From Haliotis rubra (lineage: Eukaryota), in the NCBI RefSeq assembly GCF_003918875.1, contig NW_025764967.1:248001-312000 (forward strand): 64,000 nucleotides of DNA, given 5' to 3'. The translations under genes and the position numbers were made by a program. Below, piece by piece: positions 3,601 through 27,600 of this stretch. The notes beneath the pieces are model-generated. The model was not told the DNA's origin, did not search any database, and saw nothing but the letters and a program-made list of their open reading frames with translations. Position 1 is the stretch's first letter, and each line of letters opens with the position of its first letter.

Positions 3601-4036
3601 AAGAAATATCAGACGCACATTTGTTCAGCTCCGACTAGGTTTATTAGATTTAAGTATTAATAAAGGTAGAAGATTGTCTATAGACAGAAATATGAGAATT
3701 TGTCCATTATGCACTTCATCTATTGAAGATGAAATTCATTTTATATTTGTAGGTCCATATTATGATGATCTTAGAAGAAAATATATTTCAAGTAATTATC
3801 TATCAAAATATCCAACAATAGCCTTTGTCTCAATACTCACTTCCAGAAATGAAACTGTTATCCGCAACCTTTCTCTATTTGTAAAACATGCTGTTGTCTT
3901 GACAAATGATAGGTTATCTAAGCAATAACCATTATAATTGCCATTGTATTATGTACTGTAATTATGTATATGTATGTAACTCCTTGTATATGGGCCGGAG
4001 GCCTTGAATACAATAAACTTGACTTGACTTGACTTG
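629..4036 (+). mobile_element. 5'-truncated non-LTR retrotransposon (RTE-X-like): APE endonuclease, RT, C-terminal Cys/His motif; frameshifted
   Basis: CLFETF, GDFNAR, ESDHLP (APE); QAGFR, FVDFKKAFDSV, GLRQGCILSP, LFADD (RT); YGECGRFP; CPLC...EIHF; AATAAA 4012-4017 followed by (ACTTG)4 tail. Clade assignment is inference. Confidence 0.88.
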
Positions 4037-4610
4037 GACCGACCATTCAATCTCATTTAAAAGATTAGAATCTGTAAGTGATAGATCGAGAGAAGAGTAT
4101 GTTCCAGTGGCAGGATGGAGGTAGGTGTTTGATCCATCGTTGAAGATGCATACATCATTATTTGAGATAAAATCTTCAAGGACCTTTCCCTTATTAATTG
4201 TATCAGTACTCCCCATTAGGGGGTTATGGCCGTTCAAGTCGCCCATGATAATGCAGGGCTTTGGGAGTTGATCATACAAATTCTGAATATCTGATACGCG
4301 GACAGTTGAGGAGGGAGAAGATAGAGTGAACATAGTGTAAACCCTATGTTCAGAGTCATGCGGACAGCAACAGTTTGTAGGGTGGTGTTAGGTGGAACAG
4401 GGCTATGGAGGATGCCGTGCCTCACCAGGATAGAAGTACCTCCTGTAGCTTTAACTCCAAGAGGAGAAAAGGAGTGGTAGGAACTGTACCAAAACTGTCC
4501 TTTTTAGGTAGGTTTCTTGGAGACAAAACGTAGACGGTTTAAAATCTTGAATCAATAACTGTAGTTCATTAAAATTATTCTTAAGTCCTCTGCAATTCCA
4601 TTGAATCTCC
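4037..4610 (-). mobile_element. I-clade LINE ORF2 endonuclease domain (continuation of 1-628)
   Basis: IQWNCRGL...CLQET, IMGDLNGHNPL, NDGSNTY, SLDLS, EWSV. Confidence 0.85.
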
Positions 4611-4639
4611 ATATCATGAGGTCCAAAGGAGTTGTGGAC

Positions 4640-6130
4640 ATCGAGGGGGACCTCTAAAGGACAGGTGGTCTGGCACGAGATACTTGCAGTAGTGGTATAG
4701 GGACGGGAGACAGCAGCAAAGTAAGAGATGGTTGAAGAGGATACAGTTAAACTCGTAACCCTCTTCTTATCTTCATGAAATGAGATATTTTCTTTGTGTT
4801 TGATCCTTATGGTCTCTCATTCACCTTGCCACACGGGACAAGATTTGAAAGAGGCCATAAGGTTACCACCGCAGTTTGAACACTTCACTTCAATAGTACA
4901 ATCATTGCTCTCATGCTTGTCACCACAGCGGTACCAAACAGTAGAAGAACGACAGGACTTGGATCCATGTCCAAACTTTTGGCAGTTGTAGCACCGGAGT
5001 GGGTTAGGTACATAGACCTCCACACCAATGTTGCAATAACTGGTTCTAATTGATTTGGGAATCTTCGATCGGGCGAACGTAAAGAGGTAGGTGTTTGTCG
5101 GGTGTACCACACCTTCCTTCTTGTTAGTGAATCTCTTCACGGCTGTGACAGACTGCTGGGAGAGTTCCTGGACAATTTGTTCCTCAGTCATGTCAGACTG
5201 GCATCGAGCTCTGTCCCTACAATGCCTCTACACGTGTTCAGTGTTTTGTGTGCTGGGACAACAACCTTTACATTGACAAACTCTTGTAATTTCAGTAGAT
5301 TCAGGGATTGCTGTCTCCGAGCACATTCAACTAATAGAGAGCCGGACCTGAGCTTTGTGACGTTGGCAACCTCTTCGCAGATACCAGCGATACCCTTGGA
5401 GATTGCAAATGGGTTCAATTGCAAAGGTTGCTTGTCACAAGCTTCAATGATTATAAATCGTGGCCAGTAATAGGTCAAATGGGCGTACTCTCGTCAGACG
5501 AGGAATTGTCAGAATCCATATGTCTTCGTTTTGAACCGGGGTGTTGGGAAGCCATGTCGTAAGGAATGTAGTTCAGCACCCCCTCTCTCCACCCACCATG
5601 GAGTGTCAACAGGGAGGATCTTATACTGCAGCGGATCTCCAAGTTGAAATACCGAGGATAAGGGGGTGTTATACTCCAGCGAATTTGACATGAAATGCTG
5701 GACCTGTCTACCAGGATGGTTCGGTCTATGACAATCAATTGGAGACGTACAGAAATCAGAGGGCAGCATCACCAGATTGGCCCATGAGCCACCGCCTTCT
5801 GTGCATGGGTCTGCGCGGCTGATTGGTTTTGGCAGTATATCCGTTATCATTTTGAACATGCCAAAAGTGTTATGTAGTACCAAAGTTTGTATAAACATCC
5901 CATGCACAGGGCAAGGCGTGACCAGCCGATTGGTAGAATCGGGTCTATTCTACCACCCGTCTAGGCAAAGTTAGGGTCGAAGTGGTGTGTTGGCTTAAGG
6001 AACACTATTGCCGGTTCCGTCATCCTCAACCACCAGACTCCCTTCCTCTGCCGTCACAGGGACACAACCCACGGCTAACGGGTCGCCCAATTTGGTCGCC
6101 TCTTACGACCAGCAATGGGGTGCTGTGGAC
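4640..6130 (-). mobile_element. I-clade LINE ORF1 (gag-like, CCHC knuckles) and 5' UTR
   Basis: ATG at 5555 (MASQHPGSKRR), WPRFIII, LRSGSLLVEC, VYVPNPLRCYNCQKFGHGSKSC, CSNCGG; frameshifted. Confidence 0.85.
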
Positions 6131-6235
6131 CCATTTGGCCCCGGGTCCACACGAGGGCGAAGAGTCATTAGCGTTACCCAGAACCCACCACGAGGAGGTT
6201 GCCCTTCAGGGGTGCCGTTGGGATTACCATCCATG

Positions 6236-6905
6236 GCAGACACGATAAGAAATCTTCACCAATTCTCAGGATTCATGTGAGGTGTTGAAGGATCTTCATC
6301 CTCAGAAGAGGATGAATCTTCAAATTCATGCGGACGCTGTTTGTAAGGGGGCGCCATAATTGTAATAGGTATGTTTCATCAACCCATCCACCCACCATGA
6401 AGTGTCAACCAAGACGATGCCCTACATCTGTGGATCTCAGACAGATGGCACAGGTTACCAGGAGGGTAGACACATATCTTGAAAAAATGGATCCCAACAG
6501 ATTGGTCCATGAGCCATCGTCTCCTGGGCATTAAGACTATAGACAAAGTAACTAATTTAGTTTGAACAATTTGCAATATTGTACTTTTGAAAACAATTGA
6601 TGCAAAGACAGTAAATCAAGTATTCAAAAATATAAACTAACGGGAAGAGCACTTTGCACGTATCGCGCGTGACAAGTGCAGCTTTGATAGATGTCGGTAT
6701 TTTTGAGAGGACAAAGGTAAACAGATAGGTGTTAGTATTCACTATTCTATCATTATCTTTTCTGGTGAAACGTTTAACGGATGTCACCTCTTGAGATTTG
6801 AGTTCTTTTGCAATCTCCTCTTCTGACGTGTCAGACAAACATTTCGAATGAACTCGAACAATGCCTCGACACGAATTTACTGATTTGTGCGCTGATACAA
6901 CAATC
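6236..6905 (-). mobile_element. Fragments of a second, related I-clade LINE (5' UTR, ORF1 start and ORF1 middle)
   Basis: 6380-6530 resembles 5585-5800; 6680-6900 reads HKSVNSCRGIV...VKRFTRK...TNTYLFTF. Confidence 0.7.
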
Positions 6906-7754
6906 TCAGTATCGTTTGACCCCTGTCCCGCTTGTGGACTCGTGACGTCATTGTGATTGACTTTTCAGTTGAAATTCCCCCGACTTGTTATGGTCTCATG
7001 ATCCCTCCATTACAGTTTATATGTACCTTTGACATTGTTATCGTACTTATCAACTGGGATAATATTTTGACAATGCACAGTTTATTTATGTGCCTAGTAT
7101 ATATGTGCAAAGCTTTTTTTCCTGCATTTTCCCAAGTGATGCCACTTAGAGGTCAGCCAGTAATCAATATCACAGTAGATCATCAACCTCTCACTCAATC
7201 CAAACAGCCTTTAGCTCCGCAGTCGTTAAACATCATTTTTAGATCATTGAAGAATTTAAGGTTTTCCAACCCATCTGAACAGAATACAACCCCATATCCC
7301 TACTTTTTGTTCACTATTTATGAGTGCATTATTACTTACACAAAGAATACCATAAAGGCTTTACCTCTTACTGTTCTACTTCTTGTACTTTACGTATTCA
7401 ATTCCATATATCAATTCTCTTTACTGGCCATTGTCTTGTGTACTGTACTGGGAGTGTATACGTATTTATGTCCATACACATGACACCACAAAACGTCACA
7501 GGTTCAACTAGAAATGCACATAACTTTGTATGCCCCAGAAAAAAAACGTATTACTGTTAAATTCTGATAGGACTCTACTGGCAGGGTCGCGCTGACCCGT
7601 GCGAGAGGTCGTTTGTGAAGGACAAGTTTGCGTGCTGAGTCGTCACGTTTTAAGATTCTCGGGGTAAGGTGATAATTAATGACCCGAACTTTGCATTTAT
7701 TCAAAGGAATCTGGTGCACAGCACTGAACAAAAGCTAGCTGGGTCGCATTGATC

Positions 7755-8520: not shown

Positions 8521-9001
8521 TTTATCTGCCGACCTGTCCGCTCGCTGCCTGTATGACTGCTTATATAGAGGGTTTCAGTTTGAACAACTTTTAATAAATC
8601 CACTTGCTCTTCTTATGTTATTAAAATATTTTTCAAAGCAAAACATAATATGGTGATACATATTTAGTTCCATATAGACAAATGTTGTACAATGTATCAC
8701 ACGAAGCTCATGACACTCGCACACTGAGGTTACGCTCTGTTTATCGAGCTTGCAGTTTAATGTAGGTAAGTGAATCCAAAATACAAACCATCAAAATGTC
8801 AAAATATTGACAAGTTAAGACGCGCTTAGAGCGTTGGAGGTTGATAACAATCCATGAAGAGTTTCCTCCCCTAACTGATCCAGGTTGGCTCAGCAGAGGT
8901 AGTGTGCACTTGCCCCTGTGTCGTTGTTTCAAAATTATTTCCAGATCAGTTGAGGTCACGAGCGTCAGAAAAGCACTGTCCTGTATGTTTAAAGATACAT
9001 G

Positions 9002-11307
9002 TATCTGAAGCGTAGTAGGGCCACGGTGAAAAACATTTTTGGGGTCACTTTCTCCTACGTAGGACTTAATATCTAATACGTAGGACTTAGTATCTCCTAC
9101 GTAGGACTTACTATCTCCTACGTAGGACTTATTATCTCCTACGTAGGACTTAGCATCTCCTACGTAGGACTTACTATCTCCTACGTAGGGCATACTTTCT
9201 CCTACGTAGTACTTAATATTTCCTTTTTAAGGATGGTTATTAAGTTGAGAAATGTTTGGCTATGCAGGACGTTAGATAGTCGAAATGTGAGTCAGTGAAT
9301 ATTCATGACACTAACGCAGTGTTACTATACACTGTTATTGTGTGTGTATTACGTTAGGGTGACGTGGACCCTGCTCTAATTGCAGTTATGGAGGTTTGGG
9401 TATGGTTATGTTTAATCTAGCATACNNNNNNNNNNNNNNNNNNNNNNNNNNNNNNNNNNNNNNNNNNNNNNNNNNNNNNNNNNNNNNNNNNNNNNNNNNN
9501 NNNNNNNNNNNNNNNNNNNNNNNNNNNNNNNNNNNNNNNNNNNNNNNNNNNNNNNNNNNNNNNNNNNNNNNNNNNNNNNNNNNNNNNNNNNNNNNNNNNN
9601 NNNNNNNNNNNNNNNNNNNNNNNNNNNNNNNNNNNNNNNNNNNNNNNNNNNNNNNNNNNNNNNNNNNNNNNNNNNNNNNNNNNNNNNNNNNNNNNNNNNN
9701 NNNNNNNNNNNNNNNNNNNNNNNNNNNNNNNNNNNNNNNNNNNNGTTGGGGTGAGGTTGTGATATGAAACTCGGGTTATAACACGACCTCCGCAAGTTGT
9801 TGCTTGTCTTGATGGGGCTAGGTTGGATCGGATGCAACGCTCGTTTGCGGTTTTATTCGTCATTGTTTACAGGTTGACTTGAGTGGGGTGGACAAGTGTT
9901 GAGTGCGGCGTAAAACAATACGAAATTCAAAAAGGCAAAGAATTGTCATTATAGTTATTTGTATAAATATAAGGGGATACGTACACATATATTGCCACCG
10001 ATAGTCTAAGACACGTGTGTACACGCAGATTATGATTCATGTGCAACGACCTCTGAAATATCCAATGCATAATAGTAAAGTGTAACAAAGTGCAACATAT
10101 AACAGTGAACTAACTGCAACGCGTAATAGTAGAGCAAACTGAACGCAAGGCAGAAAAGTATAACAGTCGGTCCAACACAGTACTAACGTGCAACAATTAG
10201 TTGAACACATGACTCTAATAGTGAAGGAAAGAGTAGACTCTAATAGTAAATTGAAACACATAACTGTGGACTCTAATAGTGAATGAAACGAAATGACTGT
10301 AGACTCTTACAGTGACTGAAACAGTGTAACAGGAGATTGTGTGCGTGTCTGGGGCTTTAAGTCGACCGTTTCAGATTAATCAATATAAACGTATATCGAT
10401 CATCTCCTACAGGAAATATTAAGTACTACGTAGGAGATACTAAGTCCTACGTAGGAGATATCCACTTATGAGATACTAACTCGTACGTAGGAGATACTAA
10501 GTGTTACGTGGGAGATAGTAAGTCCTACGTAGGAGATACTAAGTCCTACGTAGGAGATACTAAGTCTTACGTAGGGGATACTATGTCCTACGTAGGAGAT
10601 ACTAAGTCCTACGTAGAAGATACTAAGTCCTACGTAGGAGATACTATGTCCTACGTAGGAGATACTTAGTCCTACGGAGATACTATGTCCTACGTAGGAG
10701 ATACTTAGTCCTACGTAGGAGATACCCACTTAGGAGATACTAACTCCTACGTAGGAGATACTAACTCCTACGTAGGAGATAGTTAGTCCTACGTATGAGA
10801 TACTAAGTCCTAAGTAGGAGATACTATGTCCTACGTAGGAGATACTTAGTCCTACGTAGGAGATACCCACTTAGGAGATACTAACTCCTACGTAGGAGAT
10901 ACTAAGTCCTACGTAGGAGATACTATGTCCTACGTAGGAGATACTAAGTCCTACGTAGGAGATACCCACTTAGGAGATACTAACTCCTACGTAGGAGATA
11001 CTTAGTCCTACGTAGGAGATACTAAGTCCTACGTAGGAGATACTAAGTCCTACGTAGGAGATATTAAGTCCTACGTAGGAGATAGTAAGACCCAAAAAAA
11101 ATTTCACCTTGGCCCTACTACGCTTCCGTAGGATAGTTAGTCCTACGTAGGAGATACTAAGTCCTACGTAGGAGATATTAAGTCCTACGTAGGAGATATT
11201 AAGTCCTACGTAGGAGATACTAAGTCCTACGTAGGAGATATTAAGTCCTACGTAGGAGATAGTAAGACCCAAAAAAAATTTCACCTTGGCCCTACTACGC
11301 TTCCGTA
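9002..11307. mobile_element. Foldback-like non-autonomous DNA transposon with 21-bp minisatellite arms (IS3EU-like TACGG termini)
   Basis: Left gaagcgtagtagggcca..gtgaaa (9007-9030) is the reverse complement of right tttcac..tggccctactacgcttccgta (ends 11130 and again 11307); arms of ctacgtaggagatactaagtc in opposite orientation at 9050-9215 and 10405-11265. Confidence 0.7.
9426..9743. other. Assembly gap (N run)
   Basis: 318 consecutive N. Confidence 1.
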
Positions 11308-11660
11308 GGATAGTGCATTTCTGACATTCGTGAATTTAATTTAGCTGAAAAAATTCAAGCATTGACACAACGGCATGTGGTATGTTGTGGAGTTCGAGTT
11401 GGGGTGTTTGTCAAGCCAGACAGATCCAGGGAGACAACTCGTTAAAGCGTTTTGTCAGAACAGATTACTGTTGTCAAGTTAGTCAAAATCGGGGATATTT
11501 CAAATACTAATGCCAAACACACACATGTCCCACAGGTAGGTAAAATTTTACTTTCCCGTTAAGAAATTAGCTTTACAGGGTGCAGTAACGGCCATAAGGG
11601 GTTCCCTGCGAACGTATACTTACCGCGGCAAGAGATAATAGATAATTAAGAAACTCTTAA

Positions 11661-13767
11661 AGGGCCACTGATCCAGAGCGATTGTTTCTCGCCAACAGTC
11701 CAATTACGAAATCTAGCTGCAAATTGGTCAGCCCCTGCTCCCTCGACCGGGGACTGGGCTATTGTCCACCTTGGCAGAATTTCTTCAACCTAATCAGTGG
11801 GACATTAGGAAGGGTTGATGTCTTGTCTGATTGTAATAAGTATCCCAGCAGTGTAGGCTTTTACAGATTTTCAAATGTTTGGATGGTATAGTGACTGATC
11901 TAATTTGATCCTATTTCTGTGTTTTTTACCTAAATATTTAATCATGTAAAAATATGATGTCTATTACGTATGCTATGATATCAAAAACACACATTTGATA
12001 TATTTGAATCCATAGACTAAACGACCCCACTAATTACACATCAAACATCAACATATATATTTCTTATGTAACAATGAAGTTCCGTTCGTATCCTCAAAAC
12101 AGTGTTGGCCCATAAGTGTTTTCTTTCAGGCAATCAAACTTGCATGCAATACAACTACTCTCTTGCTGTAACCCTTTTTTGGTGGTAAACCTACACATGT
12201 TATTTCTCATCATTCACTTGATGGTCAGTTAATGAATTTATAACAGGTATAATTAGTGATAACACCACTCAGATTACCAGACAAAGGTTCTCATTTGGCA
12301 TTTCTTGTGTCTGGAGTAAATACTCATCATTATAAATTGAGGTCTGACGTGGCAAATGTATTACATCATATGTAATATACGCATGGAAGTGCAGTAAGAG
12401 GAATTATCAGCTGAGTTACAAAACAAACATTGATCAAACGATTAACCCCGATAACAGGCTGATTGATTTATTGCTTTTATCCTGCACAGCGGATTTGTCA
12501 AAAGGTAGTGTTTATGTATGTAGATTTACTAATCTTTACTGAATATACCCTGTCGTAAAGTGCCTGTGTAAAAGCAACGCCCTTCCTTCAAAGAATTAAC
12601 CGCCAATACACTGACTGATTGCTCATTATTGGCTAACTAAATTACTTTGTAAAGAATGGCGGACATCATGCAATTAGTTGCCAGGTGTGCTATCTTGGGT
12701 GACCAATGGGACTATACACCAATGTGAAAAACCTGAAACATACTTTTTCGCATATTAGACTGTTGAAAGACACATGACATGGAACAGGATACTTTGTCAG
12801 CTGCAGATGAATGGCATATCATTCCTTTATGTGGATATTGATGGATACATTCCCCGAACAAGGTAATAGCCTGATATTGTTGCTATAGCTATAGTCTGTT
12901 TTAATTTCAATATTTGCATTTTGTTTTTATTTATTGTTGTGGCATTCAACAGAATCATTATTTTCGCCGTGACGTGTAATGAGACAGACAACATACACTA
13001 GGTCGCACTCAGGGCGTGTGTGTGAAATATGATACACGTTGGCAATCTATAAAATGTATATATATTACAATCATGTTATAAATTTACTAAGTATAAGCAG
13101 ATCGTGTGCATTTTATTAAGTTTCAAAGTGCATACAAATGTGATAGTAAACTAATTAGGATTATAACACCAAATATAAAGACGTACATTGACTTCGTTAT
13201 TTCAGTCCTAACACGTTTTACCACTGGTAGATGGTTAAACTTAAAATGTTTTCATTTGTTATGAAAATAATGCCATTTAATACAACATTCAGATTGACTA
13301 GTAGTGAACCCAAGCTCACTATATCATCCCATGTACTTAGTTAGCCTTACTTTCAAAACAATGCTGTTATATCAGGCTTCACACCAAATTCAAGATCAAA
13401 CTATTTCTTGAATAAAATTCTACATCCATTTACGTTAACATTTTTATATAAAGTCAACATTACTATGACATCAACATTTTACATCAAAATCAGCATTTGT
13501 ATCAAAGTGAATATTTTTTTATAAGAAACCAAATTATTCATCAAAGTCTACATAAATTTACATCAACCTCAACATAAGATTATCGAGTAAAAACATTGTA
13601 TCTTTGTTGATCAGTCTATACTTATACTATCAATTGCGCATGAGGGTGGCGCAGCAGAGGTAACGAACCAGTCATGAGTTCTGGGATATCATCCGGGTAC
13701 TCACTGGAGAAAAACAATAACAAAAGCAACAACCAGCCCACGGAAATTGCTCTGGATCAGTGGCCCT
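11661..13767. mobile_element. Non-autonomous Kolobok-type DNA transposon
   Basis: TTAA on both sides (11657-11660, 13768-13771); TIR AGGGCCACTGATCCAGAGC (19 bp perfect); RR..YY termini rather than piggyBac CC..GG; no long ORF. Confidence 0.8.
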
Positions 13768-14114
13768 TTAAGTTTTCATTGAACATGTATAAATGACTGA
13801 AAAGAACTGAGATTCTTTGTTAGTAAATAGTCAGTTGAAATAGAAAGATCCATACAATGCTGGATTAACTATAGATGAGGCTTCCTAATGACGTCATAGA
13901 TTCCCCGTCTCGCAATGTAGTGTAGTAGTGAGTTTAGCTCTACGCCACACTGAGCAATATTCAAGCTTTTCGGCGGCGGTCTGTAAATATTCAAGTCTAA
14001 ACCAAACAGTCCACCCTGGGCACCCATACATGCCAACACACTTCACCTACTTGACGTCGTCAATCGGCTTACTAACCACAAAATGGTCCCGATTCTGGGA
14101 TATATAAGCTTACG

Positions 14115-14975
14115 ATGGCAGCCGATTCTAATAATCTAGTTACAAGCTCACAGCTTCACAACTACTTCTTCTGCTTCTGATTGGAGATAGATATTTATCA
14201 ATACAGAAGGAACCAGGCACCAAAAAGAAGAAGAAAACAGAAACAGTTTTGGGTACGTGCGTGGTTGAGGTTGGAAAGACGATTGCAATTTTGAAACTAT
14301 GACAATCTCCTATTTGAACTCAGATTCGAAGACATGTCTACGTCTTCTTTCTTCAACTATCTCCGAATGCCTCCTGATATGTTTGATGAACTGCTTTATT
14401 CCCTGTCTCTCAGACTTACCAAAAAAGAACAAACTGCAGGAAAGCTCTGAACCCTGATCTGAAGTTGGCAGTTACCATAAGCCACCTAGCCTCTGGAGAC
14501 AAGTACCCCTCCCTCTCCTACCAGTGTGAAATCACACCACAGCCATCTGATCTTTCTCACAGAGGTATGCCAAGCCATCGTAGACCACTACAAGGATACA
14601 GTGATTGCATGTCCTGCCACTCAAGGGGATTGGAAGACCATCAGTCTGGAATTCGAGCAGAGAAGGAATCTTCCTCATGTTGGCACCCTCGATGGAAAAC
14701 ACATCGTAAACCACCTGGTAGTGAATGCCTCTACCACAAGTACAAGGGTTTCTTCTCCATTGTCCTGTTCGCTCTAATTACAGATTTCAATGGGTGGACG
14801 TCGGAGGCCTGGGTCATATGGCAGATACACAAATCTTCAATGCCTCAGAGTTGAAGGAGTCTATAGAATATGGCAGCATATGCTTGCCCGAACCTGAACC
14901 ATTGCCAAATGATGATCTGCATATGCCTTACTTCATACTTGCAGATGACTTGCATTTGCCCTTCGTCAATATCTA
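14115..14975 (+). mobile_element. PIF/Harbinger (HARBI1-like DDE) transposase relic
   Basis: WVRAWL, FFNYLRMPPDMFDELL, KLAVTISHLASGD, GTLDGKHI, YKGFFSIVL, WVDVGG..D.QIF, PYFILADD; several frameshifts. Confidence 0.88.
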
Positions 14976-15124
14976 ATGAAACCCTACTCGTGCTGATGTG
15001 TGGCTTTGACAGCTCTGCTTTGTTCCATGTTGGGGATGTGTCGGGAGTTAATCGTGGTTGATCGGGTGTGAAGCGTGGCATTACGGGGATGACACGTGGC
15101 CGTCTCTGCCTCTCAATGAAAACG

Positions 15125-15610
15125 GGCAAGTTCCTATCAGCAAACGCACAATTCAGTATCAATTACATTCACATGGCTTCAAACGGCGGGTTTCAAAGAA
15201 GAAAGTTGTGGTTAGAGAGATCAATCGTAAAAACCGAGTTGCGTGGTGTCGTGAAAAGAGAAGGTGGACAGTGAATGAACAGTGGAAAAAAAGTTATATT
15301 TTCTGATGAAAGTCAAATTGTTATTGGGCAGGATAAGTGTGTATACGTGTCGAGGCAGACCGGCGAGGGATGGCCGCCCGATTTAGTGTGTCCAGAAACC
15401 AACAGAAAATATCAGGTTATGGTGTGGGGTTGTATTTGTTGGAATGGTGTGGGGACACTAACGGCTGTAGATGGTCATATAAATGCCAACAAGTAGGTAG
15501 GCATCCTAGAAAATAATTTATGGCCGGTTATTGCAAGATATTTCCCAAACGATGGGTATTTATTCCAAGATGACAATGCCCCAGTGCATCGTGCGCGGGT
15601 CATCAATGAA
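15125..15610 (+). mobile_element. Tc1-like transposase fragment
   Basis: WKKVIFSDES, VMVWGCI, LFQDDNAPVHRAR. Confidence 0.88.
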
Positions 15611-15619
15611 AACAATGAA

Positions 15620-17302
15620 AGGCACACACCCTTGAAGTTTGTAGGAGCAGGACAACCTTCTCAGTAAGGGCCCTCACAGTACCAGAGTGCCCACAGAAGG
15701 GGTACAGGGACTCTTGGGACGGCTCCCTGACTGCCCTGAAAGCCGCTCAAGATGAAGACAGCTATCTCTGACACCTGCGTAGATGGGTGGATGGGGGTGA
15801 AGTACCATCAGACTCAGAACTTTATCTGTCTAGGAAGGCCGCTAAGTCCTATCGGGTGGATAGAGAGCTATTCAAAAGAAACGAGGTCGGAGTACTGGTG
15901 AGGAAAGAGATTCCGGCGGTGAATAAACCTGAAAAACTGCTGATCCCCAAGACCCTACAGCGAATGGTGCTATATCAGATGCATGACATCCCATCGAGCG
16001 GACACCTGGGAGTTACTAAGACTAAGGAGAGGATAAAGGAGAGGTACCATTGGTACCAGTGCGGGCAAGACACCAGGGACTACGTGGCCGAGTGCTCAGC
16101 ATGCAACCGGAACAACAAACCATCACGGCAGGCCCGGTCGAGGATGACTCCCTTCCATGCGGGGGCCCAATGAAGAGGGTGCACCTGGACTTTATTGGTC
16201 CCTTGCCCACGAGCAAAGCAGGGAACCAGTACATTCTCATGATGGTAGACCAATTCACCAAAATGGGTGGAGTGCGTGCCTCTCCCGCGCCAAAAAGCAG
16301 AAGTGACAGCAAGGGCAGCGGTTAACGAATTCTTTGCCTGGTTTGGGTTCCCACTCCAAATCCATACGGACCAGGGCAGGAACTTTGGGAGTCGGCTGTT
16401 CAATGAAATCTGCCAGCTGTTGCAGGTAACAAAGACCAGGACGACACCCTACCGTCCTTCCTCGAATGGACAGGTGGAGAGATTCAACCGGACACTGATG
16501 CAGATGATCCGCTGTTATATGTCCAAGTCTCAAACCACGTTGGATGAATACATGCCCCAGCTGGCGGGGGCTATGAGGTCCGCGGGGAACCGCCATACTG
16601 GCTAGACGGCCAACCATCTGATGCTGGGCCAGGAAGTAAATGTTCCGGCGGATCTGATGTTCGGGGACCGGAAACTTCCCGCAAGAGAGTGACACCAGTG
16701 CATACGTTGCTGGGCTGCGAATAGCTATGGAGAGTGCTCATGCAGCGGCTCGGAGTAATTTGCAGACCTCGGTGGAAAGGATGAAGAGACATTACGATTT
16801 ACACACTCGATCCCAAAGTTTGGACCAAGGACAACCTGTGTATGTGTTAGACTTAGGGGCAACCCCAGGACGGTGCAAAAAACTGTGCCCTGTGTGGAAG
16901 GGGCCTTACCTCATTGGGAAAAGGCTGTCTCCTACCCTGTTTGTGGTGGCAGGGCAGCGGAGAACGTTCATGGCCCACCATGACAGGATGAAGTTGTGCC
17001 AGGATCGGGTTGTGCCTCGCTGGATGGAGAGAAGGAAGAAACGCGAGGAGGTCCCCGCTCTAGAGGGGGAGAGGGATCTCATTACAAAGGCAGAGGACGG
17101 GGAGGAAACAGGGTCCGTCTACTGCCACTGCTGCCAGCCGGATGACGGGGGTTTTATGATTGCCTGTGATGGCTGCGATGGGTGGTTCCATGGACCCTGT
17201 GTGGGGTTGACAGAGACCATGGCTAAGGCCATGGATGAATACCACTGTCCCACCTGTGGATCAGGAGCAGTGGGGCCCTTGGGAGGTGCAGAGGCATTTT
17301 GA
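15620..17302 (+). mobile_element. Gypsy LTR retrotransposon pol 3' part: integrase (HHCC, DDE core, GPY/F) fused to C-terminal PHD finger; 5' truncated, frameshifted
   Basis: HDIPSSGHLG...CSAC; RVHLDFIGP, VDQFTK, IHTDQGRNF, TTPYRPSSNGQVERFNRTL; WKGPY; YCHC...MIACDGCDGWFHGPCVG...YHCPTC (17120-17257). Confidence 0.92.
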
Positions 17303-17411
17303 TCTTTGGGGGCGGCTAGAGGTGTAGGATAGTACAGGCGTGGGATGAGGGAAGTAGAGGTTGGTGGGTACTGTTTACTCCATCGGTTCGGCGATGGAGT
17401 TGACAGTAGTT

Positions 17412-17437
17412 CTGACAAATGGTCTTCTTGTTTGCAG
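17412..17437 (+). promoter_or_regulatory. Putative splice acceptor upstream of the second Gypsy ORF
   Basis: CTGAC branch-like motif (17412-17416), pyrimidine tract tcttcttgttt, GCAG|G at 17437. Confidence 0.5.
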
Positions 17438-19374
17438 GAATCCGCAAAATACTCATCCTTGAGGAGAAATGGAGAGAAAGAATCAAGCTGAGAAGGAGGG
17501 GGTTTGGAGAGAGAGATCCAACCCCGGAGCAGCCATTAGGCAGTGCTTGGTGGAGGAAAGGAAGGTGACGGTGCGCCCAGGTGAGACCCGGGTGACGGTG
17601 TGCCAAGAGCACACAGAGAAGACTAGGGTGGAGGAGAGAACAGAAGAGACCAGGGTGATGGAGCACCCAGAAGCGATCCCGGGTGATGAGGCGCCAGGAG
17701 GAGAAACGCTGGGTAGTGCGTCCAGAGCATCCAAGTCGTCGACAGACGCAGGAGCACTGCAGCGTCACGAAGATAAGAGGAGTTCGAGGTGGAGGGTTCA
17801 AGAGTAAACGACCCACCGTGGATGGGTATGCCTGGGGCTGGGAGCAGTTGTCGTCAGACGCTGAATCCCAGCTGAACCGTCGGCCAGTCCATGGTCACAG
17901 GGTCACAAGGGGGAAGTCTATGTCCCGACAGACAGGGATCATGCTTTCCTGGCACATCTTCCACCCTACTTTGGGGCAAGATACCCCCAGGGGAATTCCA
18001 CCGACAAGGAAGTCCTCGAGAAGGTGGTCCAGGGACTACGTCAGCTGGGGACGTGGATCCTGGGGCCTGGGGCCACCCGGGAAGATCTTTCCCTCTTGTT
18101 TAACAGAAAAGTGAGGCTATCTCGGGATTGCACGATTCACGAGAGCTCAGTCGCGGGGATGCAGCGTTTGTGTCGGACCCAGGGATGGCAGATGCCGGTG
18201 AAGTTTGCTTTGCAGCCACTTAACTCCCGCGGCCTGCTTGAAGCAGTGGAGGGTGCTGCTGCACCTCTTGAATTTTGTAGCCCCAGACTGACAAAGGGAG
18301 TTCCGTCTCTTTCTGGTGGCAGTGCCGTCCCACCCTCACTGGACTGCCTGAAGCCAGGCCCCTCAAGAATGGGACCAAGACCTCCTAGAGGTGGGTGCTC
18401 CGGAAGCCATGTGGTTGCCCGAAGATCGGGAGCTCCCTCAAGAAGGAAAGGAGCCGGATACAGAGCCAGATACAGACCTGGGGACTGCCATGGATCAGAG
18501 AGCCGTCATGGGGACAGAGTGGTGGCCAGCAAAACAAGAGGGCGCCCCTGGGGGAGAGGAATCGGCAGAGGGGTAGGATGGGATCCCCTAGGAGCCGATC
18601 CAACTGGACCATCTGTTTGATGCCCATTTTCATCTGGACCGAACGTGGGCGGCCACGTTCGCCCGTACACCGGCATGTCCCGAAGTCAACCACCCCTTGG
18701 GACAAGTGCCAGTGTGGGGGGTGGAAGTACACTGCGATCCTCCCACCTATCCTAGCCGGGTCAGCACCGACCCAGCTCACCCCAAGAAAGCCTCTTGCCT
18801 TGATGACAAGGTCTTCAGACGACTGCTGGGGTTGTGGGGGGATGCCAGGTGTTTTGATTGGGGAGATCGGCCTGGATCGTTCCGTCCCAGCCTGGGAATG
18901 GAGGAAGCGAGAGCTCGTATTAAAGGAGTTGTTACCACATGTTCCCGCGGGGAGGGCTGTGATAGTCCACGTCAGGGAGCCCGCAGACGATGTGGAGGCC
19001 AGTGCAACCCATGCTCGCCTTGTCCAAATACTGAGAGGGTTCCTGCCTCAGGACCAGCCCATAGATGTACATTGCTTCTCCGGTGGGGAGGAGGTTGTGG
19101 AGGAGTGGTTGAGGGCGTTCCCGGGGTTATACTTCGGGTTCACTGGGCGAGTTAGGGATTTAACCCAGAACAAGTGGCGGGGTTGAAAGTGGTACACAGG
19201 GACCGGATACTGCTGGAAACCGACTCCCCTTATATGCCACCCGAGGGATACAGGGTGAACTCCCCGGCATTGTTGTGCTTGGTGGCCGACCTGGTGGCGG
19301 AGGTCAGAGGGGTCACCACGGAGGAGCTGCTCTCGTCCACTAATGAGAATGCAGTTCAGCTGTTTTCCCGGTAG
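17438..19374 (+). pseudogene. Gypsy-borne extra ORF: charged low-complexity N-terminal region plus C-terminal TatD-family nuclease domain (18619-19374); frameshifted
   Basis: DAHFHLD, HPKK, IGEIGLD, IVHVRE, HCFSGG, YFGFTG, ILLETDSPY, final helix TNENAVQLF; GC/purine composition continuous with the integrase region. Confidence 0.88.
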
Positions 19375-19446
19375 AAGGGCCACGACACCGCTCCTCGACA
19401 GAGGGGAGTCGGCACAGACATTGGCAGAAGACGGTGGGTTCTGCCT

Positions 19447-19965
19447 AAGAGAAAGGCGGAATGGGAACCTCGAGTGAGGGGACTGGATGGTTCCACCTCA
19501 AGGAGGACTGGGTGCCTCATCTCATAGGAAGATGGAAATTGGAAAATGAAGTGCAAGGGTCTGACCCACCCGAGGCGCGGGTGGAAATTAAATCTGGCGA
19601 GCAGGGAATTGTTGGCTCCTATGAACTGTGTGATGCGGGGTCTGACCCTTGGATTTGGGGGATAGAAAGTGATTCCCCCAAGTGGACATTCATAAAGAAA
19701 CCCCTCAATGAAGAATCCTACAAGAGGGGTATGATGGCGTTCATTCCGCAGGAAGGAGCCTATAAAACAGGGAGGGATGTGGTGATCGGAGCTATCAACC
19801 GGAAGTTGGAGGACTAGACGGAAAGTGCCGGAGACTGCCGATCGCCACAGCGAGTTCGTGGAAGCCATCTTGTAAGAATACACACTGCCTTACCTAGGGT
19901 CTACCTAAAACCGTGGGTTGGGGCATATTTACTGCAAGGTGGGAGCCGCGACTAACTCCATTAGT
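19447..19965 (+). mobile_element. Probable polypurine tract and 3' LTR of the Gypsy element (right end uncertain)
   Basis: AAGAGAAAGGCGGAA (19447-19461) then TG; TATAAAA at 19761; no second LTR in window to confirm. Confidence 0.45.
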
Positions 19966-20004
19966 GGTCAACATCGTAGTGGACCTGGTGATCACTACAC
20001 ATTG

Positions 20005-20250
20005 TTAACATTGAAGTGTTCTGTCAGAAGATGCATTGTTAATTATGTGCTTATCGCCTCCGACTGTTGTGACTCTGGGATGACCTGGTACATATTCCAC
20101 GGACCCATTGGCCTGAAATCTTTGCAACAGTCTACCAATAGCACTCTGATTCACATTAAAGCGGACAGCAACCTTCCGCTGAGTTTGACCAGATTCCAAA
20201 AGGCCAAATCCCTGACCCATTTCAGCAAGTGTCAAAAACGTCTCATTTGA
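20005..20250 (-). mobile_element. Tc1-like transposase N-terminal HTH fragment
   Basis: GLLESGQTQRKVAVRFNVNQSAIGRLLQRFQANGSV...GHPRVTT..DKHI. Confidence 0.75.
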
Positions 20251-21396
20251 AGCTGCGATTTCAAACAGGAACCTGAACAGTGAAAATGCATCAATGCATG
20301 TGTGTTGTCCTCCACCTTCCATGGATGGAGCAATAGCACGTGCAAATCATTGACATTTAGTGGCAGGTTGATTTCCATATTGATAATTTGTATAAGAAAT
20401 GTGCCATTTGTAACATAATATATCGGACGTTAAAGAACGTAATAATGACATTTAAACGGCCTGATGTGTTTTTCCATACTCTTAAAAAAGTTTGTAAAAC
20501 ATTCAGTTGTATATATTTCAAACAAAAACGATGATTTTACAACTTTTAAGAAATGGTGTTTTCACACTTGAAAAAGGCATTTTATTAACCCCTCTTTTCA
20601 TATGTTGTACAGCAATAGCTTTTGTGTTCACAGGTGATAAAGAATATTTACTTACACAACTTGTGTTACAGCTTGTAAATAATAGCACCATGTATTTGTT
20701 CTGCGTAACATCAAAAGTATTGTAAATCTGCGGATGTAAATGCTGGAGGATATAAAACAAATCATTTATTCATTCCTTCATATGGAGCTTCACATATTTT
20801 TTCACAAGTCGTGTCAGATTCTAATAATTTCGCCATAATGCTCATTAGTATGCAATATACCAATACAGAGAGCAAAACACCTTTGGAAACTTATTCGCAC
20901 GTCTGCCTTCGAAAATGTAAAATTTGCTGGGAAATGTCATGCAGAAGTAATGTTTTTAATATGCACGTGCACGTGGGTTCTGAGCAATCGTGAGCAGGGA
21001 CATTGTTGATCTTAGAGAGCCATTGGCTAAATGAAGGAATATGCTTATATGCGACTCCCAGATAAAGATTCAACTTTGCAGTAAGAGAATGGCTCTGACC
21101 ATAATTCACGTTCATCTCCAATATTCTGGGCGGCCAACGGTGTGAAACTGTTTGATTGCCAGAACATATCCCAGACATTTTGCTAAAAAAACCAATAACA
21201 TATGTATAGTTGAGATAACAGGTGCCGTACACTGAGAGTGTGGGTTCGAATCCAGTTTTCTACAGAAACGAATGTATGTTAAACAAGCTTTATTCAGCAG
21301 CAGTATGTAAACGTAAAGTCGGGAACAAAAAAAACATTTGTCAAAACTACAGAAGGACATTTATTCACGATTTACACGCCCCCGAATCATCTGGAA

Positions 21397-21677: not shown

Positions 21678-24600
21678 CTGAAATGGTATTAATTTCACAT
21701 TAATTATATGGTTGGCACCAGAAAACAGGTAAGACACAGTATTCAAATGTGAAGCATTCAAATATACATTTATTACTGGTACATACTGCATCCTGTTTGA
21801 CAATCTTTGACACAAAACTTACTGTTCAGACTTGGTTGAGGTCCATGCATGGTGATGGATGTTTCTGTCGGGTTCCCAGCCTTGTCCAGCACGTGCATGG
21901 CGCTGATGTTGTAGGTTGTCAGGTCGCTGAGCTTCAGGCCACACAGCTGGGCGGATGTGTATGTGAATATACTGGGGACGCTCTGCTGGTACAGCAAACT
22001 GCTACCCTCGATGCGAACCTATATTTTTTCATCAACAAACAAACAGGTATGAATGTAAGATATACGTGTATGGATGGAAGTTTCCAGAACTGTAAGCGCC
22101 AGCTTCATTAGTTGTACTGATAAAAGGGCACCTGTCTATGTAGTAGATGTCAGCTGGAGGAGACCTACCAGGGTGGTGTGAGGGGTCTCGGTTTCTCCTC
22201 CCTCCCACTGAAGTCTCACAGTGTCTCGGGCTACGTGACACTGGTGTCTGTCTGAGAACACGGAGGGGCTCTCCTCCAGAACCTTGAAGCCAGCAACAGA
22301 TGCCATGTCCTCACCGGACACGAGAACTACGCCATCAGATGAAGACTCGGAGACCTGCCCGACCTTGTTATAGCAACGTACTGTCGTGTACACCTTCACA
22401 CTGGATGAGATCACAAGATCAGTCAGATTCCACCTGATATATCGTACTCCATGGTTAGTTCTAGCAAACCGACGGACATCGTCATCTCCTGGGGTGTGTC
22501 CTGCAGAGGAAAGGACAGCTATTCACACAGAAGATGGATACAGTACCCTTAGGACACACAAAGAAATGATAAAACAAACACAAAGCACGCAGTTTCTAAA
22601 TACTTGTATGATTTCAATGATTAATGTATTTATAACTTGGGATTAGTTTTCATTTTAACAACACACACATAGTATCACCCACAGTTGTCTCACTGTTCCC
22701 TACCTATAGCGACGTCACAGCTGATGGAATCTGACTCTTCATCTTCCACAGCCCAGTTGGCTGCCATGTCCCCTGGTGATAGGAAATCTGTATCCACACC
22801 TAGAAACGGAGCATTATGCCTGTATCATCATCATACAGCAATGGTGGCAAGATCATACTTATGTGGTGTTGACCAAATCATTATATCGCATTATATCACT
22901 ACTGCATAAGGCCAAGCTGAGACATAAATGTATTTGGGGACAGCAACCACTGCCATTGTCAGAAACGTTTTATCTGTATATATTTCTTATGCTCTATATT
23001 TAATGGAACTGGTTCGATGTTTATGCTGGAGGACTGAAGACCCCGAGTTTCATCACAACTCAGTAGCATTAATCTATGTCAACTTGAAAGGACACCTTTG
23101 GTCAGAGTCCTTAATATCAATGTGTTGTAAGAAACATTTCACTTTTTAACAGCGGAATCTCTGGTACTGTTGTGTGGTGTTGGACTATTTGAGGAGAGTC
23201 AACTCTGGGTATTCTTTGCACGGACGTTGTAGATTTACCTGAACCATCGTTGACTTCTTGTATTGTTGGTGGTGTCATGTCCACCGTCAGGGGGTCTGCT
23301 CTGGTCAGTGATGTCAGGCCGGCAGCGTTAGTGGCGAGTACCGACACATACAGTCTGGAGTTGTGCGTCAGTTTCTTGGCAGAAAGTGTTCCTTGAGGGT
23401 TGCTACCAACGTTCGTGAAGCCTTGTAACTGTGTACCGCCTTCCACAAGACCTGCATGAAGAAGTGATTTCAACACATAGTCTCTTTAAGCTGCTTAGGT
23501 CAATAGTTTTGGTTCCGTATCACGTTCAAGTCTAAGAAATTATATAGTTTAAATTATTATTTTTTTAAATTCATTACCATATCTCACCTAAAGAACGTTA
23601 GACCATTCGATAATCATTTTCTGTGTTCTACTGAAGATCGCCGGTTAAACAGTCACCAGAAAGAAGCTTGCTTGTAACCACCCACGATTTACATTCCTAA
23701 TGTGAGTCCATTCAGCGCTGATGGGTTCGAAATAGACAATAGCCTGATATGATACTTGCCTTATAACAATACGGGCGTCCAGAGTTACATTTATCACCTG
23801 CGTCGTGTTTTTCTCTCTCAGACAACGCGGATCCGCCGTGGTGTAAACCGTCAAAATCAGTCGCTATCAAGAGTATCCCAACTCTCGCCTAGTATACCGA
23901 CAACCAGCTGGTAACATTGCAATCGGGACCTTGAATATCCACTTGTGCAGAAAAAGAGACTCACCTCCTGCCCACTGGTACAAGGTGATGGGAGACTCAT
24001 CTACAGCCCACTGGAACATGGTGATGGGAGACTCACCTACTGCCCACTGGTACATGGAGATGGGAGACTCACCTACTGCCCACTGGTACATGGTGATGGG
24101 AGACTCACCTACAGCCCACTGGAACATGGTGATGGGAGACTCACCTACAGCCCACTGGTACATGGTGATGGGAGACTCACCTACAGCCCACTGGTACATG
24201 GTGATGGGGGACTCACCTACAGCCCACTGGGACATGGTGATGGGGGACTCACCTACTACCCACTGGGACATGGTGATGGGAGACTCACCTACTGCCCACT
24301 GGGACATGGTGATGGGAGACTCACCTACTGCCCACTGGGACATGGTGATTGGAGACTCACCTACTGCCCACTGGAACATGGTGATGGGGGACTCACCTAC
24401 TACCCACTGGTACATGGTGATGGGAGACTCACCTACTGCCCACTGGGACATGGTGATGGGAGACTCACCTCCTGCCCACTGGAACATGGTGATTGGGGAC
24501 TCACCTACTACCCACTGGTACATGGTGATGGGAGACTCACCTACAGCCCACTGGTACATGGTGATGGGGGACTCACCTACTGCCCACTGGAACATGGTGA

Positions 24601-27600
24601 TGGGGGACTCACCTACTGCCCACTGGAACATGGTGATGGGAGACTCACCCACTGCCCACTGGTACATGGTGATGGGCGACTCGCTGTCCGTGAAGTGCCA
24701 GGACACATGCAGGGACGACCAGTCAGGCAGGAACACGGCGTTCACCTCAACGTGCTTCTCTGTGTCCACAGTGCCGTCATGTCCACTATAGGTGATGCTC
24801 TGAAGTGTCACGTGATCAACCGCCATCACCATGGATCTTGACTTTGTGCCAATAGTAAGTTGTGCTGATTCCTCCCGAGCTATGAAGGAAAGTGTGTGTG
24901 TATTCCACATGATAACAGAATGTCTACCCACATCACACACCCCTCGGCACAGATTGGGCTCAAGACTGAATGTGATGACTTCAGCGCCAACTGACACGAA
25001 GCCTTCTATAGCGCTATGATGTGTGTCCGTGACCTCTGTATATCCTGCATGAATCTTCACTTTGTACATTTGTGCCACACTGAGATGTATATCTGCCTGG
25101 AGAACAGATCCGCTGACTACAACATAGCTGCTACCATGTCTGGCTAATTGACGCTCGGATGTAATGATGTGTATACACGAATAGTTGTCAGTCTGCCAGT
25201 ACTCGGGAACACGGTCATTACATGTCGATGAATTAACAGGTTTATTTTGTATCTCAAACGAGGGATTTTTCACCAGGTTGTCTCCCAAGTATGCAACGGC
25301 CTGTGGTTCTGGGGGAGACGTGTCCACGACAACACCATCCGATACAGCTACGTCTGAGGCGTGACCCACTGCATCTACAGCATACACCTTGCTCCATAAA
25401 CGTGTACCTAGAAGCAAGGGAATATCAATATCAAGAGAATCCTAAAGACTCTTTTGCGCCATCGAGAACTTCATAAGGTGTGACAACCTGCATCATTCGA
25501 CCTTTGTTAACAGACTGAACTTCCGTCACCATTGGAAAATACATGCTTTAACAAATTGCTGCTGAACAATTACTTTTGTGACATTTTGTAATTCACCGGA
25601 AGTACGGGAAGAAGGATGAGCACAACCACCAGTAGTGAGCTTCCCTGGGTAATCACTATGGAGAATCTATACTGACAGAAGAGGCGTGTTGACATCTAGG
25701 TCAGATAAACTGATCTGGACACATACCACTCTGGAGAATCTATACTGACAGAAGAGGCGTGTTGACATCTAGGTCAGATAAACTGATCTGGACACATACC
25801 ACTCTGGAGAATCTATACTGACAGAAGAGGCGTGTTGACATCTAGGTCAGATAAACTGATCTGGACACATAGCACTCTGGAGAATCTATACTGACAGAAG
25901 AGGCGTGTTGACATCGAGGTCAGATAAACTGATATGGACACATACCACTCTGGAGAGGTGAAGCAAGTTGTGCCTTGAAGGTGGTGTGAAGCCCGGTCTC
26001 CCGCCAGCCTAGCACACTGCAGTCGGTTGTGTCGTTGTGTCTTCCCACACACCAGAAGTATGTGATGATGGTGGAGTCCGTGTCGGAGAAGCCGTGCCAG
26101 GAAGCCGATACAGCGGATGGAGAACTCTGGTAGTCCGTGTCGTGCATCTCTGCCGGAATGGACCAAACAAAATCAGTGGTCAAGGAATAATCACTTCTCA
26201 CAAGGTATTGTAACCCGTGTGCTGATGCTTGTACCCCAAACATGGATTGTTATGGACGTATTCTAATGGGGTAGTTGGGCACTGTGAAGTCAAAGCTCTT
26301 CGTGTAGACATTAATCATTCCCTAAACGTTCTATCACGTTTCTAGACTTAAGACAAACAGGAGGCCCTGAAAAACATACCTTGTCCATCACTGACTGTAC
26401 CCGCAACTGGAGGCAGCACGTCCACTCGGACACCGTCAGAGTAGGCCCAGCTGACCAGGCCAGCTCTGCTGTAGGCCACGACACTGGAGAAGTACACTGT
26501 GGCTGCCTGTAAACTCAGGTTCCTTGCTGTGTAGGTCGTCGTGGTCAGGTCATCAGACGCGTGGATATTGTGTCCTGAAGAGTGAGTGAGTGAGTGAATG
26601 GGTGAGCGGGCGAGTTAGATGGTGGGTGGTTGGCTTTGGGTGGGTGGGTTTTGCCACATTATGACAGGGAGACACCAGAAAAGGGTTTCACACACTGTAC
26701 ACACAATCTTATGCACCAGGATCTTTAGAATTACCACCAGTTTGCATTGCCTTTGCGCAGAGATGTGTTTATTTGGATGCGCTAAGTACTGTAAGCCATG
26801 AATCAGGGTATGACGCATGGACACAAGCTACCAGGCTAGATACATCAAGTACCTCGACATTCACGTCATCTTATATACTGATCTGTAATATGTTGATGGA
26901 GTCGGGAAGCTGTGGACGCTCACCCCCGGGGCTTGTGCTGATGTAGACTCGGTACTTCAGAATACCAACGGCGCCCGGCAGGAACTTGTTGGTCCAGCTG
27001 ATCCTCATTGTGTCCGTCTCCTTCTGGAAGTCTACATCCTTCAGTCCATGGTCACCCCTGACCTCAATAACCTGCATCATTCACATATAGTCTACATCCT
27101 TCAGTCCATCGTCACCCCTCACCTCAATAACCTGCATCATTCACATATAGTCTACATCCTTCACTCCATGGTCACCCCTGACCTCAATTACCTGCATCAT
27201 TCACATATATCTACATCCTTCAACCCATCGTCACCGCTGAGCTCAATAACCTGCATCATTCACATATAGTCTACATCCGTCGATCCATCGTCACCCCTCA
27301 CCTTAATAAGCTGCATCATTCATATATAGTCTACATCCTTCACTCCATCGTCACCCCTCACCTCAATAACCTGCATCATTGACATATAGTCTACATCCTT
27401 CACTCCATCGTCACCCCTGACCTCGATAATCTACGTTATTCACATTCATATCTCGTGTACCATAGATAATTTGTGAATTCATGGAATACATCACCAAATA
27501 TTAACATCTTAATGGCAATAAGAACAATTATCGTTTTCTGAAATGTAAGTGGGACGCATACTTTTAATTTTCAATACCCTCTGATAAGAATGAGCTGCAT

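Follow-up and report, generated by a model that had tools for sequence, protein, structure and literature searches.

The integrase of a Ty3/Gypsy LTR retrotransposon family in abalone carries a PHD finger at its C-terminal end, and this fusion is almost certainly a real family trait. It is old and conserved across a clade of mollusc and marine elements. The starting point was a 64,000-nt stretch of Haliotis rubra DNA (the window), in which positions 15620-19999 hold one dead copy of this high-copy family, truncated at its 5' end and with the 3' LTR only. The parts of this copy are listed below in window coordinates.

15620..15771 (+): 5' edge of the truncated element, at the RNase H/integrase junction; the full-length H. 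rubra copy is matched from here on
15772..16170 (+): integrase N-terminal H2C2 zinc-binding domain, a frame piece closed by a stop; Pfam Integrase_H2C2, E 1.1e-18
16026..16602 (+): integrase catalytic core (rve) in two reading frames, with a stop at the end; Pfam rve at 16249-16602, E 3.5e-10
16658..17119 (+): integrase C-terminal GPY/F module and acidic/basic linker; weak Integrase_p58_C match; dN/dS 0.19 against the H. rubra copy
16895-16909 (+): WKGPY motif (GPY/F type), from the translation
17030-17047 (+): basic cluster RRKKRE in the linker, from the translation
17120..17257 (+): PHD finger (C4HC3) of predicted H3K4me3-reader type; Pfam PHD, PDB matches, AF2/Foldseek, clade conservation, dN/dS 0.21
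17300..17302 (+): pol stop codon, 14 codons past the last zinc ligand, from the translation
17303..19777 (+): ORF3 region, in the env position, with TatD-like nuclease pieces in decay (18389-19371); intact homologues in L008 and L002
19778..19999 (+): 3' LTR of 222 bp (TG...CA) with a polypurine tract in front of it; matches both LTRs of the H. rubra copy at 82%

The truncated copy in the window and its full-length relatives

Translation of window positions 16658-17299 (+ strand) gives a stop-free stretch of 214 codons. An earlier note on this DNA had described a complete C4HC3 PHD in frame with the integrase C-terminus after WKGPY, and this was borne out. The finger starts 70 residues past WKGPY inside the open stretch, and the peptide quoted in that note (YCHCC to HCPTC) is exactly 17120-17257. 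The full PF00628 (PHD) model aligns to residues 156-200 of the 214-aa piece with an E value of 1.2e-9 and 38.4 bits (curated cut-off, 24 bits), a match far beyond chance. Besides PF00628, only PHD_5 and a weak Integrase_p58_C match the piece in Pfam, and the same Pfam scan found no chromodomain in it.

The three features of a Ty3/Gypsy integrase (H2C2 zinc domain, DDE core and GPY/F module) are all present in the window by Pfam and the WKGPY motif, each open piece of the broken reading frame being searched separately. The integrase is interrupted by three frame changes and two stops between ~16150 and 16660. With its integrase broken and everything 5' of the RNase H/integrase junction missing, the window copy is a fossil rather than a working gene. 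A host gene with introns was ruled out, since the reading frames overlap where they change, leaving no gaps like those of introns, and there are stops, as in a decayed copy. No RT or RNase H was found upstream of the window integrase pieces. An unrelated Tc1/mariner fragment (HTH_Tnp_Tc3_2, 9.9e-11) lies upstream of the element at 15052-15664. The G+C content is 52-60% in the block from ~15700 to 20000 versus 31-45% in the flanks. The decayed TatD_DNase pieces within 18389-19371 gave Pfam E values of 2.8e-14 and 1.3e-8. No second copy or LTR pair was found within the window.

A word-index protein search with the 214-aa piece returned three relatives, one in Haliotis rubra (88% identical, annotated as 'ALFIN-LIKE 7-like'), one in H. 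asinina (62% identical, annotated as 'BPTF-like') and one on an ENA contig (36% identical). A near-complete copy stands at the H. rubra locus (L003). Its 223-bp LTRs, at 2309-2531 and 12034-12255, are 98.2% identical and have TG...CA ends; a 4-bp target duplication and PBS-like and PPT-like sequences are also present. The coding order of L003 is a Gag ORF, PR-RT-RNaseH (RVT_1, 1.3e-25), RNaseH-H2C2-rve, and the integrase C-terminus with the PHD (1.4e-11). In blastn, window positions 15620-17328 match L003 8839-10548 at 89.8%, and window 19778-19999 matches both L003 LTRs at 82%. It follows from these alignments that the window holds a 5'-truncated copy ending in its 3' LTR.

An element that is open throughout was found on one ENA contig (L008). 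It has LTRs of ~250 bp (96% identical), a Gag of 873 aa, a Pol of 1291 aa whose stop lies two codons past the last PHD cysteine, and an ORF3 of 816 aa with a TatD_DNase match (1.3e-37). Both H. asinina copies (L001) lie in an inverted duplication, one per arm, and each retains an RNase H remnant upstream of the integrase. The Ty3/Gypsy Pol order PR-RT-RNaseH-IN is present in L003, in L008 and in the polyproteins P0022, P0029, P0041, P0047, P0054 and P0173. These polyproteins are intact from PR through RT, RNase H, H2C2 and rve to the PHD and are 1265-1315 aa long; P0054 is a 13-member cluster and P0173 is from Patella caerulea. From end to end, an intact element of the family consists of an LTR, Gag, Pol (PR-RT-RNaseH-IN-PHD), an ORF3 that often has a TatD nuclease domain, and a second LTR.

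These relatives decide whether the fusion belongs to the element at all. It could instead stem from chance read-through of a single dead copy into a captured host exon, from an assembly or gene-model artefact, or from a Ginger-type DNA transposon, whose integrase is Gypsy-like. The Ginger reading was a serious rival at first because RT is missing in the window and a Ginger1 element with a C-terminal PHD is on record: the transposase of Ginger1-9_HM of Hydra has a PHD (PMC2836005). The two H. asinina copies, which keep just an RNase H remnant in an inverted duplication, could be read in the same way. Against it, full-length copies carry LTRs together with Gag, PR, RT and RNase H ahead of the same IN-PHD, and even L001 retains an RNase H remnant upstream. 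Ginger1 elements are marked by terminal inverted repeats, lack of RT and a transposase as sole enzyme, whereas the full-length relatives have LTRs, Gag, PR and RT. A Ginger DNA transposon was thus ruled out by the H. rubra copy and several intact elements. The artefact reading was likewise refuted by the full-length LTR copies, the intact Pol-PHD polyproteins and the occurrence of the fusion in dozens of divergent clusters. We consider it scarcely credible that the fusion is anything other than a property of the element.

About 300 pieces per run at ≥80% likeness were found among Logan contigs of two DNA-type runs (contig depth is not quantitative), and the family is therefore high-copy. Two small runs guessed to be RNA contain gap-free Logan contigs (contigs, not reads) that cover the LTR as well as the integrase C-terminus with the PHD; none of their gap-free contigs spans 17372-19707 in the ORF3 region.

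Breadth and descent of the integrase-PHD fusion

An exhaustive protein search over 1.84 billion cluster representatives gave 5754 matches at E ≤1e-3. Among the best 150 of these matches and their cluster mates, 70 proteins combine an integrase C-terminal module with a PHD, and at least 55 separate 50%-identity clusters end in this pair. The PHD sits at the extreme C-terminus in nearly all of the 70 fusion proteins, with a tail of ≤10 aa, and is separated from the integrase C-terminus by a linker of 4-51 aa. Cluster look-ups added four further Pols of 1273-1321 aa, which were taken as intact by length alone. The earlier note had pointed to other copies as the place where the PHD might be missing; in the intact Pols and across at least 55 clusters the PHD is present and in frame.

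The named hosts are Haliotis rubra, H. asinina, Patella caerulea, Batillaria attramentaria, Mytilus galloprovincialis and M. edulis. Apart from two fusion proteins mis-binned in a 'Sedimenticola' MAG, the other carriers are contigs of marine metagenomes or Logan, one of them from Tara Oceans.

A maximum-likelihood Pol tree was built with the PHD removed; it contained no reference chromovirus sequences. The family of the window groups within a clade of PHD carriers (support 99/99). A single branch sets apart all ten PHD-bearing rows, with weak support (53/50) for including the two most divergent of them. A single acquisition of the PHD would be compatible with this topology and is not proven by it.

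The PHD occupies the same position in Pol as the chromodomain does in chromoviruses. The earlier note had spoken of a PHD "instead of a chromodomain", and this holds for the position. As a swap it finds no backing in the nearest relatives. No chromodomain was detected in the PHD-bearing Pols scanned or in the five nearest full-length PHD-less Pols, and these five end soon after the Integrase_p58_C/GPY/F module. Because the nearest PHD-less Pols have no chromodomain, the comparison favours a reader added to a plain GPY/F integrase rather than one exchanged for a chromodomain.

The same note had paired the PHD with a TatD ORF as a second module, which was found in several lineages and is absent in others. 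ORF3 with a TatD domain follows the IN-PHD in the window (decayed), in Mytilus (the fused gene model P0171 and locus L007), in L002 (a 492-aa open stretch with TatD) and in intact form in L008. In the H. rubra copy the TatD ORF3 is mostly deleted. The Patella ORF3 shares the N-terminal region only and has no TatD match; the Tara contig has no TatD and carries an unrelated 211-aa ORF in the place of ORF3. PHD and TatD often travel together, and the PHD is the more constant module.

Reader type and constraint of the PHD finger

A phmmer search of PDB sequences placed the window PHD next to CFP1 (E 2.9e-13), DIDO1 (E 6.8e-13), BPTF (E 7.2e-13) and PHF2 (E 7.7e-13). The next matches were PHF8, KDM7, Spp1 and TAF3, and the E values for the CFP1/DIDO1/BPTF/PHF2/PHF8 set span 3e-13 to 1e-11. 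For an AlphaFold2 model computed from the alignment of the clade, pLDDT averages 77.9 (~90 in the core). By Foldseek the model superposes on BPTF bound to H3K4me3 (2f6j) with an rmsd of 1.2 Å over 50 columns, and on 4l7x and 3kqi with an rmsd of 1.1 Å each. Other superposable complexes are those of DIDO, PHF2, PPS, Spp1, TAF3 and ING. Among the 5754 matches of the protein search, the closest proteins outside transposable elements are of KDM5 type (a PLU-1 domain with PHDs) and BPTF type (PHD-PHD-bromodomain). All of these lines of comparison point to the H3K4me2/3-reader subclass of PHD fingers, in agreement with the BPTF/DIDO/PHF2 type proposed earlier from the letters alone.

The aromatic cage of BPTF consists of Y10, Y17, Y23 and W32. 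The window Tyr before Cys1, the Met of F-M-I and the Trp of W-F-H align with BPTF Y10, Y23 and W32 and with the equivalents in DIDO and PHF2. The site of BPTF Y23 is a conserved and functionally required Met in other H3K4me3-reading PHDs (PMC8246079). Conservation was assessed in an alignment of 45 clade PHDs with a mean column identity of 37%. C13, C25, C28, W31, H33, C36, C52 and C55 are invariant in 45/45; seven of the eight zinc ligands are therefore among the fixed positions, and the first Cys (C11) is kept in 44/45. The cage of Tyr, Met and Trp expected from the window sequence extends through the clade, with Y/F10 in 44/45, M22 in 42/45 and the Trp in 45/45. At the fourth BPTF cage position (Y17) the window has a one-residue deletion, and the clade has mostly Asp or Glu and an aromatic residue in 10/45. 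In this the clade resembles DIDO1 and CFP1.

Comparison of the window with the H. rubra copy gave a dN/dS of 0.60 for the linker, against 0.21 for the PHD and 0.19 for the C-terminal module of the integrase. These values rest on this one pair, since the H. asinina pairs were dropped (synonymous sites saturated, and one alignment spoiled by an internal stop). Given 0.21 against 0.19, the PHD is as constrained as the integrase and is under purifying selection.

From the sequence and the model, the PHD probably reads methylated H3K4. How tightly it binds, and whether it prefers me3, me2 or some other ligand, is uncertain because the fourth cage position is mostly Asp/Glu and aromatic in just 10 of the 45. 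A ligand other than methylated H3K4 is conceivable, such as unmodified H3, a non-histone peptide mimicking H3, or a partner of the element's own like the ORF3/TatD protein. The acidic fourth position and the frequent joint occurrence of PHD and ORF3 would fit such a ligand. So would the behaviour of PHF2-type PHDs, which also bind non-histone H3-mimic peptides, as with the VRK1 N-terminus (PDB titles 7m10 and 8f8y). We regard it as improbable, however: the invariant Trp with the nearly invariant Met and Tyr/Phe are hallmarks of a Kme3 cage that H3K4me0 readers do not have, the top structural neighbours by Foldseek are all H3K4me2/3 complexes, and PHD-bearing elements without TatD occur.

A possible role at integration and comparison with known systems

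With methyl-H3K4 as the probable ligand, a mechanism can be outlined. Processing of Pol by the protease would leave the PHD at the C-terminal end of the integrase, where a short and variable linker connects it to the GPY/F module. The PHD would bind an H3 tail trimethylated at K4 and so tether the intasome to nucleosomes at active promoters. The tether would bias strand transfer toward active promoters or 5' gene regions, in transcriptionally permissive chromatin. We lean modestly toward a PHD that reads H3K4me3 on the integrase and, by tethering the intasome, would bias insertion to active chromatin. Whether the PHD actually steers the choice of insertion sites is at best an even call. More tentative still, though plausible, is a mollusc-wide, possibly wider marine-invertebrate, Ty3/Gypsy clade that has its own H3K4me3 reader, prefers active promoters and in many members has a TatD-family gene at the env position.

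Chromoviruses such as MAGGY and Tf1 resemble the clade in having a histone-mark reader appended after the GPY/F module at the end of Pol. The two differ in fold and ligand: chromoviruses use a chromo fold and H3K9me, whereas the abalone clade has a zinc-finger PHD fold with H3K4me3 as the predicted ligand. According to Gao 2008, as cited in PMC6673714, chromodomains steer integration toward marked chromatin.

The PHD might instead bind chromatin (H3K4me or the H3 tail) for another purpose, such as retention of the PIC on chromatin or in the nucleus, stimulation or regulation of the integrase, or recruitment of host factors. Conservation and selection show that the PHD has a function but do not say which. 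Nor are the few insertion sites that were fetched (window, L001 and L006) visibly promoter-proximal; all lie in TE-rich or duplicated DNA. Copies that are old and have survived form a biased sample, so these sites neither support nor seriously contradict targeting. Against a role other than targeting, a C-terminal reader on the integrase is the arrangement for which targeting has been shown in chromoviruses (as cited in PMC6673714), and any stable tether to marked nucleosomes should bias the sites of strand transfer. We consider a purely non-targeting role rather unlikely, and the tethering mechanism remains our preferred account.

PHD fingers in transposable elements are already known, and no described precedent was found for the integrase-C-terminal architecture. 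Retrotransposon-encoded PHDs have been called widespread (PMC6673714). In Chlamydomonas, Gypsy-7a_cRei, REM1 and the Chlamys PLEs have, like the clade, a PHD in a retroelement polyprotein, and the PHD was proposed to influence insertion (bioRxiv 10.1101/2022.06.16.496473; PMC8557442). In Gypsy-7a_cRei the PHD lies between RNase H and integrase and not at the integrase C-terminus, and these green algal elements have no evident relation to the mollusc clade. The PHD is also an accessory domain in the ORF1 of CR1-like non-LTR elements, in Ginger1-9_HM and in Rehavkus (PMC2836005); the CR1-like ORF1 PHD goes back to Kapitonov and Jurka 2003, as cited in PMC6673714 and PMC8557442. These are other element classes with the PHD in other proteins (ORF1, or a transposase with Ulp1), and none is the integrase tail of an LTR retrotransposon. 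In the literature covered, outside of which lie Repbase reports and subscription journals, we found no description of a PHD as the integrase C-terminal tail in metazoan Gypsy elements, nor of a link between TatD and retrotransposons.

Host-type readers tied to recombination or captured by elements are known from other systems. The RAG1/RAG2 recombinase can be likened to the clade in that the RAG2 PHD reads H3K4me3 (PMC8246079), but there the PHD is on a separate subunit of a domesticated host recombinase and is not fused to the integrase of a mobile retroelement. CopiaMBD of arthropods is likewise a case of a host-type epigenetic reader captured by LTR retrotransposons and kept under selection; it differs in being a methyl-CpG binding domain in Copia that reads DNA methylation and not a histone mark (PMC6673714).

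The abalone clade would add a self-contained version of a strategy used by retroviruses. MLV integrase with BET proteins and HIV integrase with LEDGF/p75 are examples in which the integrase is linked, through its tail or core, to a protein that reads active chromatin, and integration is biased as a result. In these retroviruses the reader is a host adaptor protein, whereas in the abalone clade it is encoded in the integrase itself. If integration is indeed guided by the reader, the clade would supply the missing combination, a self-encoded reader of active chromatin, beside integrase-fused chromodomains (heterochromatin) and host adaptors (retroviruses). It would then be the first LTR-retrotransposon lineage with a built-in tether to a euchromatin mark, a mirror of the heterochromatin strategy of chromoviruses. 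The choice of landing site by a retroelement decides its own survival as well as damage or regulatory novelty for the host, and the hosts here are molluscs, in which TE biology and chromatin are little studied. The integrase-PHD unit offers a compact natural domain pair for the study of reader-guided integration. The mechanism predicts that insertions would be enriched at TSSs compared with PHD-less sister families. Abalone gene models named 'ALFIN-like', 'BPTF-like' and 'ING4-like' exist because annotation mistakes the tails of these retrotransposons for host chromatin genes.

An internally deleted element and the conserved frames of the clade

Locus L002, which carries a relative with a TatD ORF, contains an element derivative with an internal deletion at positions 9698-14157. 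A first LTR of 257 bp, 99.6% identical to its partner, immediately adjoins the integrase C-terminus with the PHD finger, and this is followed by an open TatD ORF of 492 aa and the second LTR. It was concluded that this is a short, young element in which the accessory modules, PHD and TatD, alone have been retained.

The N-terminal third of ORF3, the reading frame at the env position, is conserved among distant family members (near-complete Haliotis rubra copy L003, 11191-11595; Patella locus L006, 12942-13340; L002, 11787-12190) and is kept even where the TatD domain is absent, as in Patella. This region in the three loci has no match in Pfam. The Gag N-terminus of the clade shows a weak match to a helix-hairpin-helix (HHH_3) in the fully open element of ENA contig L008 (7305-9926) and in the Mytilus locus L007 (3569-4733). 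The same Gag proteins also have a PNMA-like capsid and a CCHC knuckle.

Relatives in other loci and databases

P0007 and P0172 (NCBI MES9880773.1 and MES9884281.1), both assigned to a 'Sedimenticola sp.' MAG, are integrase-PHD tails that belong to this clade of eukaryotic retrotransposons. Contigs of the host, an invertebrate, are probably included in that MAG. Three Haliotis RefSeq models (P0001, P0002 and P0004), which automated annotation has called 'PHD finger protein ALFIN-LIKE 7-like', 'BPTF-like' and 'inhibitor of growth protein 4-like', are retrotransposon integrase-PHD fragments.

In L003, the young copy of H. rubra is flanked by two cytochrome P450 gene models (1-2422 and 15540-20522), and the end of the first model overlaps its 5' LTR. 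In H. asinina, the truncated element is present in locus L001 as a 3.4-kb inverted duplication, with one arm at positions 3773-7203 and the other at 8675-12009. The arms are 92% identical and are separated by a spacer of about 1.5 kb; the PHD of one arm lacks three zinc ligands.

Repeats and transposon remnants in the window

The following features were recorded in the window.

9426-9744: run of 319 N, assembly gap or masked
10391-11283, 23848-24795 and 25581-25945: three tandem arrays, units 21, 36 and 73 nt
14390-14973: open stretches, candidate PIF/Harbinger-type DDE transposase remnant
15052-15664: Tc1/mariner transposase fragment (HTH_Tnp_Tc3_2, 9.9e-11)

No Pfam match at E ≤ 0.01 was found for the open stretches at 14390-14973; on reading of the peptide, they resemble what is left of a DDE transposase of the PIF/Harbinger type. 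The Tc1/mariner fragment lies directly against the point at which the Gypsy copy is truncated on its 5' side, and may be a trace of the event that took away the 5' part of the copy.
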